In this document: positions 33,261 through 43,681 of the stretch, piece by piece
Numbering within the stretch: position 1 is the first letter of the stretch
How the letters are laid out: each line of letters opens with the position of its first letter
Source of the DNA: Sminthopsis crassicaudata
Taxonomy: Eukaryota
Length of the DNA stretch: 64,000 nt
NCBI RefSeq assembly: GCF_048593235.1
Contig: NC_133621.1
Span: 299,035,146-299,099,145, forward strand
Reading direction: 5' to 3'
The notes under the pieces: model-generated
Seen by the model: the letters and a program-made list of their open reading frames with translations, nothing else
Databases searched by the model: none
Told to the model about the DNA's origin: nothing
Made by a program: the position numbers and the translations under genes

Positions 33261-35752
33261 GTCCAGAGAGATCCTAGGGGGAGGGGGGGAAGTGGGACCC
33301 GGCATGGATGAGAGTTAGGGTCTCCATCTCACATGGCGGAGGAGAGTTGGGGTGGGGAAGTGCCCTTTGTTGAATAGAAGGAAGAGGAAAAGATGAAGTG
33401 GAAAGATTCATCTTTTGCCTGAGTATCCCTTTCTGAAGTGAATGACTGTCTTACAGAGTTAATTCCAACCCAGCCTGATGGTACAGAAGAGGCTCCATTG
33501 GAAAAGGAAGAGGCTGGAGATGGCAGCTTGGGTGGGGTGGGGGCAAAGGATTCCTCAGGTCCTTCCAAATTCTTCTCCTCCTCCCTTTACAATCAATACC
33601 AAATTAACTTCACAAATATACTTCTTACCTCTTTTCTTGGAAACCAACTCATAAGATTACCGATCTCTTCCTACTTACTGCCATTGCTTCTCCATTGACT
33701 GACAACAGGAAAGGGCCTCTCATCCATGCTGCCCTAGTTTCCTTGCCCTTCTCCCCAATGTTTGGGGGACAGGAGAAACTAAGTGCCTTGATCTTAATGA
33801 TACTCCTAGGGTCATCCTCGATTCCCCTTTCATTCTAAACTTCCCCCTCCCTTGCCAATTTCCCATTCCCCTGAGTAAGACTGGTTCTTGTCTGAAACTG
33901 GGACCAAGACTTGACTCTAGAGAATGGGGGATGCTCTTCCTGAAAAGTTTACCAGAGAGGATTTCCTTCCCTCCTTAGTCAAATGAAGGCAGCTCTGGGA
34001 GAATAGGGAAGGCAGGGGAAAGCTGACTTCCTTACTAGGGAGCTCCCCACTAGGTTGACCCAAATGCCAGATACATATGATGCCAGCCAAAGCTGGCACT
34101 GGGGAAGCCTATGAGATACAGAAAGCATGAGCTTGGAGCCCAGGGAAAAAATTTGGGTTCCATGTTTGATTCTGTTGCTCACTTGTGTGATTCCTAGAAG
34201 ATGTCAGTACTTCCTTATTTGAGCCTCAAGTTCCTTGATATGTAAAAAGAGGAGTGGACTGGATCAATCATCTAAGTTTAGTTCCTCTTTTAATATATGG
34301 TAAAAGTGAGCCCCAGAGAGACTTCCTCAAGGTCGCAGAGCTGAGACTGATTCCAACTTCAGCACTATTAGTCTGGAGAGAGTCTGCTTCCCTAGAACCT
34401 TTCCGGAGGGTGGCCTCTCATCAATTGGAAGCTGCAGGTCCCCTCAGCTCCCAGCCTGCCCTAACTTCACTGTATCTGGTCTTTTCAGGAACTTTTTCTT
34501 GTAAATATGAACCTCCAACCTGAAGTATGTGTAAAAGTACTGGGAGATATATTGCCTGGTGCCAATCTGTAAGTGACAGATGGGAAGGATGAGATAAATG
34601 TTAATGATGGGTGAGAGCTGAATCCTTAAAACACCCGGCTGCACTTGATTCTTGAAAACCAAGGTGGTTTTCCCTTAGCATTAGATGGCAGAGCTAGGAC
34701 TCTGCATCAGGAAAAACCTGCTAACAGGAGCTTCCCAGTAGCTTCAACAAGTAGTGGGCTCCCTGTCTCTGAAAGGAGTACAATATAAACCATGTTAGGG
34801 TGGGTGGAGGGGGAGTACTGCAGAAGAGCATCCTTAGTGCTTCAGGTCAGAATGGGGTGAGAGTCCCTTTGGGGGTCTTCCAGCTCAGGGATTTCTGAAC
34901 GGGGAATTCCAAGGCTCAGAGGGTCCATGCCAATGATAATGGTGTGTTCCCCATTCCCAGATTTCGAATTAACCTGGGCAAGGATGAAAATAACATTGGC
35001 CTACACTTCAACCCACGCTTCCGAGAGAATTGCATCGTCTGCAATGATTCCACGGCAGGTAGATGGGGCCAAGAAGCAAGGGAGAAGAGATTCCCCTTTA
35101 AGCAAGGGACAAGCATAGAGGTAAGAACTCAGAATCAGAGCATGGAGTATCCAAAGGAACCAAGAATGTCTGGGAAGGATGCAAGAGATGTTCCCAATCT
35201 CCCCCCCCTTTCATTCGACAGAAGAGACCTGGAAGGGAATTCTGGTGGGAGAAAGACAAAAGAGGGGAAAAGGGGTTTGCAAAGGTCAGGAGCAAGAATC
35301 CCAGAATCCCTTGAACTGAGGAGAGATTGGGGAGAATGGGAGGGAATTGGGAAGGGCAGTGGTGGCAATGGGATAAGAAGAGATTCTGAGGTGTGCCAGG
35401 ACACACAGCAGGATCTCAGATTTAGAGCTGAAGAGAATCTCAGGGGCCACCTAGTCTCACCCCCTCATTGTACAGAGGAAGAAACTGAGTCTCAGAATAG
35501 AAAAATTATTTCCCCAAGATTCTACAGTGCCAGCTAGTCTTGAGGTCTTCCTGTCTCCAAGCCCAGGATTCTGTGTTCAATTCCTTCTGCCTTCTCTCCA
35601 TTCAGATTTCCATTGTCTATGATGGGAAGAAGTTTTTGATAAAGCTGCCTGATGATTATGAGTTCACTTTCCCCAATCGCCATAACTATCAAAAGCTGGA
35701 CTACATGTCAGTTTATGGTGATTTCAATGTCGTAAGGGTGGATTTTGAATGA
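32946..35752 (+). CDS. G3: prototype galectin, 131 aa, canonical binding site, shortened L4 loop
   Basis: Exons 32946-32954 (ATGCACCAA|gtgagt), 34489-34568, 34961-35120 (160 nt), 35606-35752. Protein MHQELFLVNMNLQPEVCVKVLGDILPGANLFRINLGKDENNIGLHFNPRFRENCIVCNDSTAGRWGQEAREKRFPFKQGTSIEISIVYDGKKFLIKLPDDYEFTFPNRHNYQKLDYMSVYGDFNVVRVDFE. AATAAA at 35810. Confidence 0.93.
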
Positions 35753-41230: not shown

Positions 41231-43681
41231 ATGCCCCAAGTGAGTGCGCCAGGGTCCAGGCGGCGGGTGTCCTTGTCCACGGTATAGGCTGAGGGGCCAG
41301 GGCTGAGGGATCCGGTGCTTGGAGAGAATCTTGGACACTCGGGAGGGTTCTGCTCCAGAGCGGATGGGGGATGGGGATGTGTTGCTCTTCTTCTCTGTAT
41401 GGGCTCTTCTCCTTCTCTGTCACCTCACCCTGACCCTCCTTTACCACCATCACCACTCCCAACTTGAACTAGTCGTGATCCCTGGCTGCTGGTCCGAAGT
41501 TTTGACAAGCAAGTGAGTCCAAAGAGATGCTGGAGAGAGGGCAGGTGGGGAAGTGGGACCTGGCATGGAGGAGAGTTAGGGTCTCCATCTCACACGGGCT
41601 GTGGGGAAATGCCCTTTGTTGAGTTGAGAAGGAAGAGGAAAAGATGAAGTGACCTAGATTGGGACTAAGACTTGACTCTAGAGAATGAGAGTTACTCTTC
41701 TTGAAAATTTACCTCCTTAGATGAAAGTAGCTTTGGGAGAATGGAAGAATGGGTCAGGGCGGGAGGAAACTGAGCTAGCCATCAGGAAGTTTCCCTGTTG
41801 AGTTTCATCATGACCCAAGTGCCAGATACATATGATGCCAGCCAAAGATGGCACTGAGGAAGCCTGTGTCACACAGAGAGCCCGGCTGTAGGACTAGGGA
41901 AAGTGTAGGTGCCACTTCTGATTCTGTTGCTCACTTGTGTGATCTAGGAGAAGTCAGTTCTTCCTAATTTGAGCCTCAGAATCCTGATGAGTAAAAAGAA
42001 GAATGAACTGGATCAATCTATTAGGCTAGATCCTCATTTAACATATGGTAAAAGTGAGCCCCAGAGAGACTTCCTCAAGGTCGCGGAGCTGAGACTGATT
42101 CTAACTTCAGCACCATTAGTCTGGAGAGAGTCTGCTTCCCTAGAACCTTTCAGGAGGGTGGCCTCTCACCAATCGGAAGCTGCAGGTCCCCTCCGCTCCC
42201 AGCATGCCCTAACTTTGCTGTATCTGGTCTTTTCAGGAAATTTTAATTGAAAATATGAAACTCCAAACTGGATCGCACATAAAAGTACTGGGAGATATAA
42301 AACCTGGTGCCAATCTGTAAGTGACAGATGGGAAGGATGAGATAAATGTTAATGATGGGTGAGAGCTGAATCCTTAAAACATCCGGTTGCACTTGATCCT
42401 TGAAAACCAAGGTGGTTTTCCCTTAGCATTAGATGGCAGAGCTAGGACTCTGCATCAGGAAAAACCTGCTAACAGGAGCTTCCCAGTAGCTTCAACAAGT
42501 AGTGAGTTCCCTGTCTCTGAAAGGAGTACAATATAAACCATGTTAGGGTGGGTGGAGGGGGAGTACTGCAGAAGAGCATCCTTAGTGCTTCAGGTCAGAA
42601 TGGGGTGAGTCCCTTTGGGGGTCTTCCAGCTCAGGGATTTCTGAACGGGGAATTCCAAGGCTCAGAGGGTCCATGCCAATGATAATGGTGTGTTCCCCAT
42701 TCCCAGATTTCGAATTAACCTGGGCAAGGATGAAAATACCATTGGCCTACACTTCAACCCACGCTTCCGCCCCTACTTCCAAGAGAATGTCATTGTCTTC
42801 AATACCTTAAAGCATGGAAGATGGGAACAAGAAAAATGGGAGAGGAATACCTATTTTGTGCCAGGGGAGAGAGTATTGGTAAGAACCTGGAATCATATCA
42901 TGGAATGTCTGGAAGGATGCAAGAGATGTTCCCAACCTCCCCCCTTTCATTTGACAGAAGAGACCTGGAAGGGAGTTCTGGTGGGGGGGGGGAAGACAAA
43001 ATGCTAGAGGGGAAAGGGAGTTTGCAAAGGTCAGTGGAAGAATCCCAGCATCCCTTGAACTGAGGAGAGGTTGGGGAGAATGGGAGGGAGGGAGCTGGGA
43101 AGGGCAGTGATAGCAATGGGATAAGAGGAGACTCTGGAGTGTACCAGAAGCCACCATAAAACCCTAGATTAGGTTATACTGTAACACATTTAATATGCAT
43201 TGGATTGCCTGTCATCTAGGGGAGGGAGGGGAAAATTTGGAAAAATGAATATAAGGGATAATATTATAAAAAAATTACTCATGCATGTGTACTGTCAAAA
43301 AATGTATAATTATAAAATTAATTTTTAAAAATAAAACCCTAGATTTAGAGCTGGAGAGAACTTCAGGGGATATCTTGTTTTACCCCTTCATTTTACAGAG
43401 AAGGAAACTGAGGTTCAGCATGGGGAAATCATTTCCCTAAGAATATACAGTGTCATCTAGTAAGAGTCTTGGGGTCTTCTTGTCTCCAACCCCAGGGTTC
43501 TGTGTTCATCTCCTTCTGCCTTCTCTCCATTCAGATTTGCATCATCTTTGATGGGAAGCAGTTTTTGGTAAATCTGCCTAATGACAATCAGGTCGTTTTC
43601 CCCAATCGCCTTAACTTGGAAGAGATTAACTTCATGTCAATTAATGGTGATTTCACTATCAAAAAGGTGGATTTCGAATGA
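41231..43681 (+). CDS. G4: galectin-1-like protein, 135 aa, R73W/G69E site variant
   Basis: Exons 41231-41239 (ATGCCCCAA|gtgagt), 42237-42316, 42707-42878, 43535-43681. Protein MPQEILIENMKLQTGSHIKVLGDIKPGANLFRINLGKDENTIGLHFNPRFRPYFQENVIVFNTLKHGRWEQEKWERNTYFVPGERVLICIIFDGKQFLVNLPNDNQVVFPNRLNLEEINFMSINGDFTIKKVDFE. The C-terminal FPNRLNLEEINFM closely matches galectin-1 FPNRLNLEAINYM. AATAAA at 43739. Confidence 0.93.
43171..43331 (+). mobile_element. Short L1 3' tail in G4 intron 3
   Basis: TSD TAAAACCCTAGATT at 43157-43170 and 43332-43345. Confidence 0.88.

Follow-up and report, generated by a model that had tools for sequence, protein, structure and literature searches.

Do the coding exons of two neighbouring lectin genes evolve faster than the introns between them, and does such a contrast testify to positive selection? 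[quoted passage not shown] It contains two adjacent genes on the same strand, G3 (32946-35752) and G4 (41231-43681), which are intact four-exon galectin-1-like genes with open frames and clean AG/GT borders. An initial annotation of the window had noticed that the exons of the two genes differ almost only by amino-acid changes while their introns are near-identical, and had compared this with the positively selected congerins. Here we argue that G3 and G4 are probably an old pair, in which almost all of the locus has diverged with an excess of replacement changes, and in which a later patch of gene conversion has spared the core of exon 2.

Divergence along the two genes

The counts on which the congerin comparison was built were reproduced when we recounted them. 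Exon 2 differs at 17 of its 80 nt, and the 11 codons concerned all change the amino acid, none being synonymous-only; past the 12-nt indel of exon 3 there are 19 replacement and 2 synonymous-only codons, and in exon 4 these numbers are 24 and 3. Intron 2 (392 versus 390 nt) carries 5 substitutions and one 2-bp indel, and the last 189 nt of intron 1 show 10 differences (94.7% identity). Exon 2 thus has 17/80 differences, as against 15/579 in introns 1 and 2 together, a contrast that chance does not explain (Fisher p=7e-9).

Taken by itself, this contrast would suit a young pair of genes, the introns of which give the neutral divergence (1-5%), and the exon differences of which were produced by strong positive selection (a ratio of replacement to synonymous divergence, dN/dS or omega, of about 10), as proposed for congerins and for snake-venom phospholipase A2 (PLA2). 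The absence of synonymous-only codons from exon 2 argues in the same direction, as do at least 15 residues (4 of them in exon 2) that are found in G4 and in neither its devil nor its antechinus counterpart. We regard a young pair as quite improbable, however, since intron 3, the flanks and the 3' untranslated region (3'UTR) are as diverged as the exons, and since dS of the unconverted exons is 0.25 and not 0.01-0.05; the evidence on the age of the pair given below adds to this.

In a locus-wide alignment of G3 and G4, divergence is 22.6% in the 5' flank, 5.3% at the end of intron 1, 21% in exon 2, 1.3% in intron 2, 24% in exon 3, 16% in intron 3, 21% in exon 4, 15% in the 3'UTR and 25.5% downstream. 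The exons are thus not faster than the introns in general, and their divergence (21-24%) is at the background level of the locus. The earlier observation that exons outpace introns holds only inside the patch of low divergence, and the description of the introns as near-identical fits intron 2 and the end of intron 1, but not intron 3. Because the unconverted non-coding DNA is as diverged as the exons, introns 1 and 2 cannot serve as a neutral yardstick.

The homogenised patch of about 740 bp starts in the last 190 bp of intron 1 and ends inside exon 3 (Table 1), and outside the core of exon 2 it contains 16 substitutions in about 670 nt. Its longest identical run measures 132 nt, compared with at most 44 nt in 5000 permutations of the alignment columns, and its divergence of 1.3-5.3% stands against a dS of 0.20-0.25 and against 16-25% in unconverted non-coding DNA. 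Close behind the 12-nt indel (after 35023), divergence rises abruptly to 38%, from about 35030 through the remainder of exon 3. A function of their own (as an enhancer, as a splicing element or as the host of an RNA) could in principle have kept introns 1 and 2 alike in place of conversion, and the sharp bounds of the near-identical stretch would agree with this. Yet non-coding constraint is normally much looser than 1.3% over 470 nt, and the patch takes in coding sequence and ends inside exons. Moreover, intron 2 is 67-78% identical to its counterparts in the other galectin-like genes of the window (G1, G2 and G5), which is no better than for any other intron of the array, and a scan of the patch against Rfam gave no RNA family match. 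These last two results make functional constraint unlikely, and taking all of them together we consider it extremely so.

Age of the gene pair

A maximum-likelihood (ML) tree built from 21 galectin-1-like proteins places G4 together with proteins of devil (P0152) and antechinus (P0141) with support of 99/97, has G3 as sister to these three (94/91), and leaves the diprotodont proteins outside. An approximately unbiased (AU) test rejects a clade of G3 and G4 (p=0.022). This grouping of G4 with devil and antechinus, and the rejection of its pairing with G3, is not what a young pair would give. Individual residues tell the same story: in exon 4, those that G4 has in common with devil and/or antechinus include N93, Q99 and E110, and at polarised sites G3 retains L4, N8, V13, K93 and E99, the states found in Petaurus, tammar or koala or in other galectins. 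Many reversals would have to be assumed if G3 were young. On these protein comparisons, the duplication predates the split of the dunnart from devil and antechinus, and the near-identical patch must be due to later homogenisation by gene conversion. Homogenisation of the introns by conversion had been foreseen in the initial annotation as the rival of selection, and both the locus-wide divergence and the protein tree bear it out.

The converted stretch itself also contains residues that can be compared. The Asn of a 'DEN' motif is present in both G3 and G4, and is Leu in devil, antechinus, Petaurus, tammar and a galectin-1 of Antechinus (P0129), which is consistent with conversion. Gly and Asn at the end of exon 2, and Arg and Glu around the indel, are likewise common to G3 and G4; they fit conversion, but could also reflect changes on the stem of devil and antechinus.

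Alternatively, G3 could be a young copy of G4 that appears old and ancestral-like because its exon 2 core, its exon 4, its flanks and the second part of its exon 3 (exon 3b) were overwritten by conversion from array members that have not been seen. Such overwriting would be favoured by the extension of the array beyond the window, and by motifs of G3 that are common in other array members, for instance the LPD-YEFTFPNR type in exon 4. Nevertheless, each segment of G3 is closest to G4 within the window, where no closer donor for exon 2 or exon 3b of G3 was found, and a word-based search of a protein collection that includes the dunnart RefSeq proteins found no dunnart protein closer to G3 than G4 is. 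As several separate donor tracts would also be needed, we hold this explanation to be highly improbable.

The exon 2 island and the borders of the patch

Inside the patch, the core of exon 2 stands out as an island with 17 differences in 63 nt (27%). In this core, G4 has I2, I4, E5, K8 and S13 in common with devil and/or antechinus, and G3 retains L4, N8 and V13, as the diprotodonts do. Because at least 5 of the 11 replacements are common to G4 and its orthologues, the core has been overwritten in neither direction. About half of the exon 2 differences therefore predate the patch, contrary to what a young pair would require.

The two flanks of the island differ in divergence (5.3% versus 1.3%, p=0.009); 4 of the 10 intron 1 differences involve CpG, and without CpG sites p is 0.12. 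The flanks are equally compatible with a single patchy event and with two adjoining ones. Under either, the gap left unconverted matches the variable coding core, and on its 3' side the patch ends where the diverged half of exon 3 begins. By a hand estimate, a random gap of 63 nt in a tract of 740 nt would fall inside the 80-nt exon about 3% of the time. We infer that selection rather than chance set the borders of the tract. There is also a mechanical alternative, in which the already diverged exon imposed a mismatch-dependent block on the heteroduplex, and which needs no ongoing selection.

The 12-nt indel, four codons in the loop between strands S4 and S5 that are missing only in G3, falls within the patch, 7 nt short of its 3' edge (35030). 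Since identity resumes for 7 bases past the indel, the deletion in G3 may postdate the patch.

Possible selection on the coding sequences

Counting codons conceals synonymous steps in codons that were hit more than once. The Nei-Gojobori method (NG86) finds 13.7 synonymous differences over 79.3 sites and 73.3 replacement differences over 304.7 sites, with dN of 0.29, dS of 0.20 and omega of 1.48 (1.46 in the comparison of all ten paralogue pairs of the window). Using our own pairwise implementation of the GY94 likelihood on a sample of 128 codons, omega was 1.95-2.29 for all codons (likelihood-ratio test, p 0.018-0.048) and 2.2-2.9 when the converted codons were left out (p about 0.01-0.03), and parametric bootstraps under omega=1 gave one-sided p values of about 0.02 and about 0.007. 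According to the initial annotation, an omega of at most 1 once conversion is allowed for would have spoken against selection; with dS taken from the exons, omega stays above 1, at 1.5 by NG86 (not significant) and 2.0-2.9 by ML.

Non-coding DNA gives an independent scale. Where this DNA is unconverted, its Jukes-Cantor distance is about 0.27, which the dS of the unconverted exons (0.25) matches. At replacement sites 30.4% of positions differ, compared with 22.3% in unconverted non-coding DNA (p=0.005), and in the second part of exon 3 (codons 51-80) 42% of them do, against the same 22.3% (p=0.0003). Both reading frames have been kept. Neutral simulations at the observed number of substitutions remained free of stop codons in only 7-9% of cases, and at the non-coding density of indels 8 would be expected in the coding sequence, where only a single, in-frame one is seen (p about 0.005). 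Neither G3 nor G4 looks like a pseudogene.

The pair could also be explained by old age and conversion only, with very weak constraint (omega about 1), no positive selection, and tract borders set by chance or by a divergence block. We consider this rather unlikely. It would be in keeping with the scatter of the differences over the whole fold and with the loss of a canonical sugar-contact Arg (R74W) from G4. What it does not readily accommodate are the ML omega values and their bootstraps, the excess of replacement over non-coding divergence, and the open frames of both genes, for which the neutral odds are about 4e-4 (the product of the stop and frameshift probabilities). In addition, conserved motifs have been kept, so that part of the protein is constrained and the remainder must run above the average.

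Several points weigh against an old pair with a replacement excess and later conversion, and some of them favour the explanation by weak constraint. The NG86 omega is not significantly greater than 1 (Fisher p=0.14), and the many multi-hit codons may inflate the ML omega. The other paralogue pairs among G1 to G5 (ten pairs in total) have dN/dS values of 0.64-0.97, so that the array as a whole is marked by weak constraint or diversification, and this is the family baseline against which G3 and G4 have to be seen. Non-coding divergence may be underestimated because the alignment is gapped. Protein trees of 135 columns and a handful of sites are the basis for the age of the pair and for the escape of exon 2, and a word-based protein search found no orthologue of G3 in devil or antechinus. 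The coincidence of the gap with exon 2 is a single observation, at the level of about 3% just estimated by hand, and two conversion events of different age, considered as an explanation of the unequal island flanks, were not secure once CpG sites had been dropped.

On balance, positive or diversifying selection is likely but not proven, with moderate support, and we infer that the replacement excess is adaptive. The congerin-like selection proposed earlier is accordingly retained in part: the intron contrast loses its value as proof, because the patch is due to conversion, and an omega above 1 stays, with moderate support only. It should be noted that identity between G4 and its orthologues, all of one marsupial family, is only 63-69%. 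G4 has more unique residues than the devil protein (17 versus 3, p=0.003). A burst specific to the dunnart G4 was considered and ruled out, as G4 is faster than the devil protein but not than that of antechinus.

A probable history of the pair

The history that we favour would have begun with a duplication in a tandem galectin array, before the dunnart split from devil and antechinus, after which nearly the whole of each locus would have diverged by 16-25%. Sites that change the amino acid would have diverged somewhat more, above all those in the latter half of exon 3. On the branch leading to the dunnart, more recent interlocus gene conversion, in one patchy event or in two, would then have overwritten some 740 bp, which begin near the end of intron 1 and reach 70 bp into exon 3. 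Introns 1 and 2 would look frozen because of this conversion patch. Conversion would have halted to either side of the 63-bp exon 2 core, and again where the diverged half of exon 3 starts, which are the places at which the paralogue-specific residues begin. The likely cause of these halts would be that high divergence hinders the extension of the heteroduplex, or that selection removes converted alleles, or both. Of this history, the gene models, the mosaic of divergence, the statistical reality of the tract, the old age of the pair and the escape of the exon 2 core are shown by the data.

A more far-reaching possibility, which we put forward tentatively and which is less likely than not to be right, is that conversion acted as a sieve that marks the selected sites. 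In that case, the core of exon 2 and the half of exon 3 that encodes S5-S6 would be actively protected from homogenisation, G3 and G4 would be functionally distinct lectins with different glycan specificities and perhaps without mixed dimers, and the galectin-1 locus would have undergone a so far undescribed, arms-race-like diversification across marsupials. The N-terminal strands, which are encoded by the exon 2 core, form the dimer interface of galectin-1, and S5-S6 belongs to the sugar groove.

Position of the changes and the sugar-binding site

G3 and G4 differ at 43% of their residues. With the strands taken from an AlphaFold2 (AF2) model, differences lie in S1 (residues 5-8 and 11), in the S1-F2 turn and F2 (14-18), in S5, S6 and the following loop (19 of the 30 positions between 58 and 87), and in F3, F4, F5, S2 and F1. 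The only unchanged elements are the FPNR motif, the VDFE at the C-terminus and S3-S4, which lies in the converted part. According to the initial annotation, sites on the sugar-binding face and at the termini would have supported selection; instead, the changes are spread over both sheets and nearly all strands (exposure was not scored).

Aligned to galectin-1 and with the Met counted, G3 has all seven sugar-contact residues (H45, N47, R49, N62, W69, E72 and R74), and G4 has six of the seven. The substitution R74W is specific to the dunnart G4, the residue being Arg in devil and antechinus; it lowers the confidence in predicted lactose binding by G4, and leaves its family membership by descent unaffected. 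The positions that correspond to galectin-1 His53 and Asp55 are lost with the deletion in the S4-S5 loop of G3, and in loop length G3 is like its galectin-2-like matches. G4 has one cysteine and G3 has three, compared with five in a eutherian galectin-1 (P0057). The cysteine-free congerins are said to be less sensitive to oxidation (PMC3269628), and by analogy the smaller number of cysteines could mean less oxidation sensitivity.

Gene models and the galectin array

The spliced models correspond to RefSeq proteins of Sminthopsis crassicaudata, G3 to XP_074123348/350 (P0151, P0134) and G4 to XP_074123343 (P0140). These matches were reached exon by exon and then via database proteins, the exons being joined only for the codon statistics. 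When exon 3 of G4 was used against representative proteins, no close relative was found, but a protein of Dromiciops was, and word searches seeded with this protein led to the RefSeq proteins. Exons 3 and 4 of both genes score above the curated cut-off of PF00337 (galactoside-binding lectin), and the RefSeq proteins carry this domain as well. The AF2 model of G4 is a galectin beta-sandwich of about 135 residues with 11 strands in galectin order and a predicted local distance difference test (pLDDT) score of 94.8. The best PDB matches of both proteins are galectin-1 crystal chains (E of 1e-31 for G4 and 1e-37 for G3), and congerin chains in the PDB also match both. LGALS1 has a 9-nt coding exon 1, an 80-nt exon 2 and a 172-nt exon 3. 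Both genes have this layout, followed by a last exon, with phases as in LGALS1, except that exon 3 of G3 measures 160 nt.

The initial annotation had placed exon 1 at an ATG followed by GT at 34297 in G3 and at 42045 in G4, but in the RefSeq models exon 1 encodes MHQ (G3) or MPQ (G4) further upstream (Table 1). The near-identical 189 nt are consequently only the end of an intron 1 of 1.5 kb in G3 and 1.0 kb in G4. The ATG-GT of these positions is absent at the homologous place in G1 and G2, and the sequence around 34297-34299 and 42045-42047 may resemble the core of a short interspersed element (SINE) of MIR type.

Table 1. Positions in the window of the exons and signals of G3 and G4 and of the segments of the homogenised patch
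Feature	Gene	Coordinates	Strand	Remarks
Exon 1, coding part (Met-His-Gln)	G3	32946..32954	+	GT donor after it; N-terminus of RefSeq XP_074123348 (P0151)
Exon 2 (80 nt)	G3	34489..34568	+	AG/GT borders and frame; identical to P0151/P0134
Exon 3 (160 nt)	G3	34961..35120	+	Pfam Gal-bind_lectin E=8e-16; 12 nt less than in G1, G2, G4 and G5
Exon 4, coding part including TGA	G3	35606..35752	+	Pfam E=5e-6
AATAAA	G3	35810-35815	+	
Exon 1, coding part (Met-Pro-Gln)	G4	41231..41239	+	GT donor after it; fits RefSeq XP_074123343 (P0140)
Exon 2 (80 nt)	G4	42237..42316	+	Borders and frame; identical to P0140
Exon 3 (172 nt)	G4	42707..42878	+	Pfam E=5e-11
Exon 4, coding part including TGA	G4	43535..43681	+	Pfam E=6e-6
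AATAAA	G4	43739-43744	+	
Homogenised patch	G3	34295..35030	+	Intron 2, closing part of intron 1, 14 nt at the end of exon 2, 70 nt at the start of exon 3
Homogenised patch	G4	42043..42788	+	From the coordinate map
Divergent core of exon 2	G3	34492..34554	+	Inside the patch
Divergent core of exon 2	G4	42240..42302	+	From the coordinate map
12 nt (4 codons, S4-S5 loop)	G4	42770..42781	+	In all other copies; missing only in G3, after 35023
Second part of exon 3 (S5-S6 and next loop)	G3	35031..35120	+	Most diverged stretch: 37/97 aligned nt (G3 35024-35120)

Galectin-like genes in the window are all on one strand and comprise, besides G3 and G4, G1 (about 4.9-6.2 kb), G2 (about 18.1-19.3 kb) and G5 (about 52.4-53.7 kb). 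The last part of the window (63246-63568) contains intron-1-like sequence that suggests the start of a next member, and on this sequence evidence the array appears to reach past the window. Between G1 and G2, just before an assembly gap (11685-11815), positions 10765-11160 are 68-81% identical to intron 3 of G3 and G4 and may represent the remnant of a galectin gene.

The introns of the two genes also differ by larger segments. Intron 3 of G4 contains a repeat of about 190 bp (43148-43345) that is absent from G3. At least eight further copies are present in the window (e.g., 47696-47863, 31930-32077, 32183-32358, 50357-50503 and 60103-60278), and since they lie on both strands, the repeat is an interspersed element. 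About 480 bp of intron 1 of G3 (33400-33890) have no counterpart in G4; counterparts exist upstream of G5 (51939-52250), at 63246-63568, and partly upstream of G2 and G1, which points to a deletion in G4 and not to an insertion in G3.

Two very small sequence-read runs, X5 and X6 (62-84 million letters), contain 5-8% of the sampled words of positions 34200-43800. Arithmetically, this share is about the summed exon length of G3 and G4, which is only a hint of abundant spliced mRNA.

Comparison with known systems

We found no published description of a galectin-1 array in the literature on marsupials. The mechanism as such is already known: interlocus conversion together with diversifying or weakly constrained evolution, here in a tandem lectin array. 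G3 and G4 add one pair to a fast-diversifying marsupial galectin-1 array, and they provide a clean case in which exons that seem faster than introns are mostly an artefact of the homogenisation of the introns, and in which proteins from other species separate old divergence from recent conversion.

The closest parallel in mechanism is provided by the L/M opsins of primates, the introns of which are homogenised by interlocus gene conversion while the exon differences are kept by selection (PMC3213168; reviewed in PMC3924837, which also cites Innan 2003 on RHCE/RHD). As in G3 and G4, the opsins are tandem paralogues older than the species, their introns are more alike than their exons, exon-based trees (here, trees of proteins) group the orthologues, and a peak of exon divergence lies between homogenised introns. 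Unlike in G3 and G4, a few spectral-tuning sites are protected in the opsins and the other coding sequence is conserved, whereas the dunnart genes differ at 43% of residues with an omega of at least 1; moreover, only the 5' part of the dunnart gene is homogenised.

With LGALS1 and galectin-2, the dunnart genes have the four-exon layout and the fold in common, G3 having in addition the seven sugar contacts and the loop length of the galectin-2-like matches. Eutherian LGALS1 is under purifying selection according to a 2019 study (PMC6751361). In contrast to eutherian LGALS1, the dunnart copies are many and fast-evolving, and G4 has R74W and a single Cys.

In terms of protein evolution, G3 and G4 are best compared with congerins I and II of the conger eel, for which accelerated evolution of a galectin after duplication has been described, with a dN/dS of 2.6 (PMC3269628). 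Both cases concern a duplicated pair with the prototype galectin fold, with pairwise dN/dS estimates above 1 (1.5-2.9 for G3 and G4) and with changes in the N-terminal strands and around the sugar groove. The congerin case is built on cDNAs, structures and binding assays, whereas for G3 and G4 the significance is marginal, and the intron contrast that prompted the analogy is due to conversion. If the replacement excess of G3 and G4 is adaptive, the dunnart array would be a mammalian counterpart of the congerins, and a candidate for the study of how lectins and glycans co-evolve in immunity, in milk or in pouch young.

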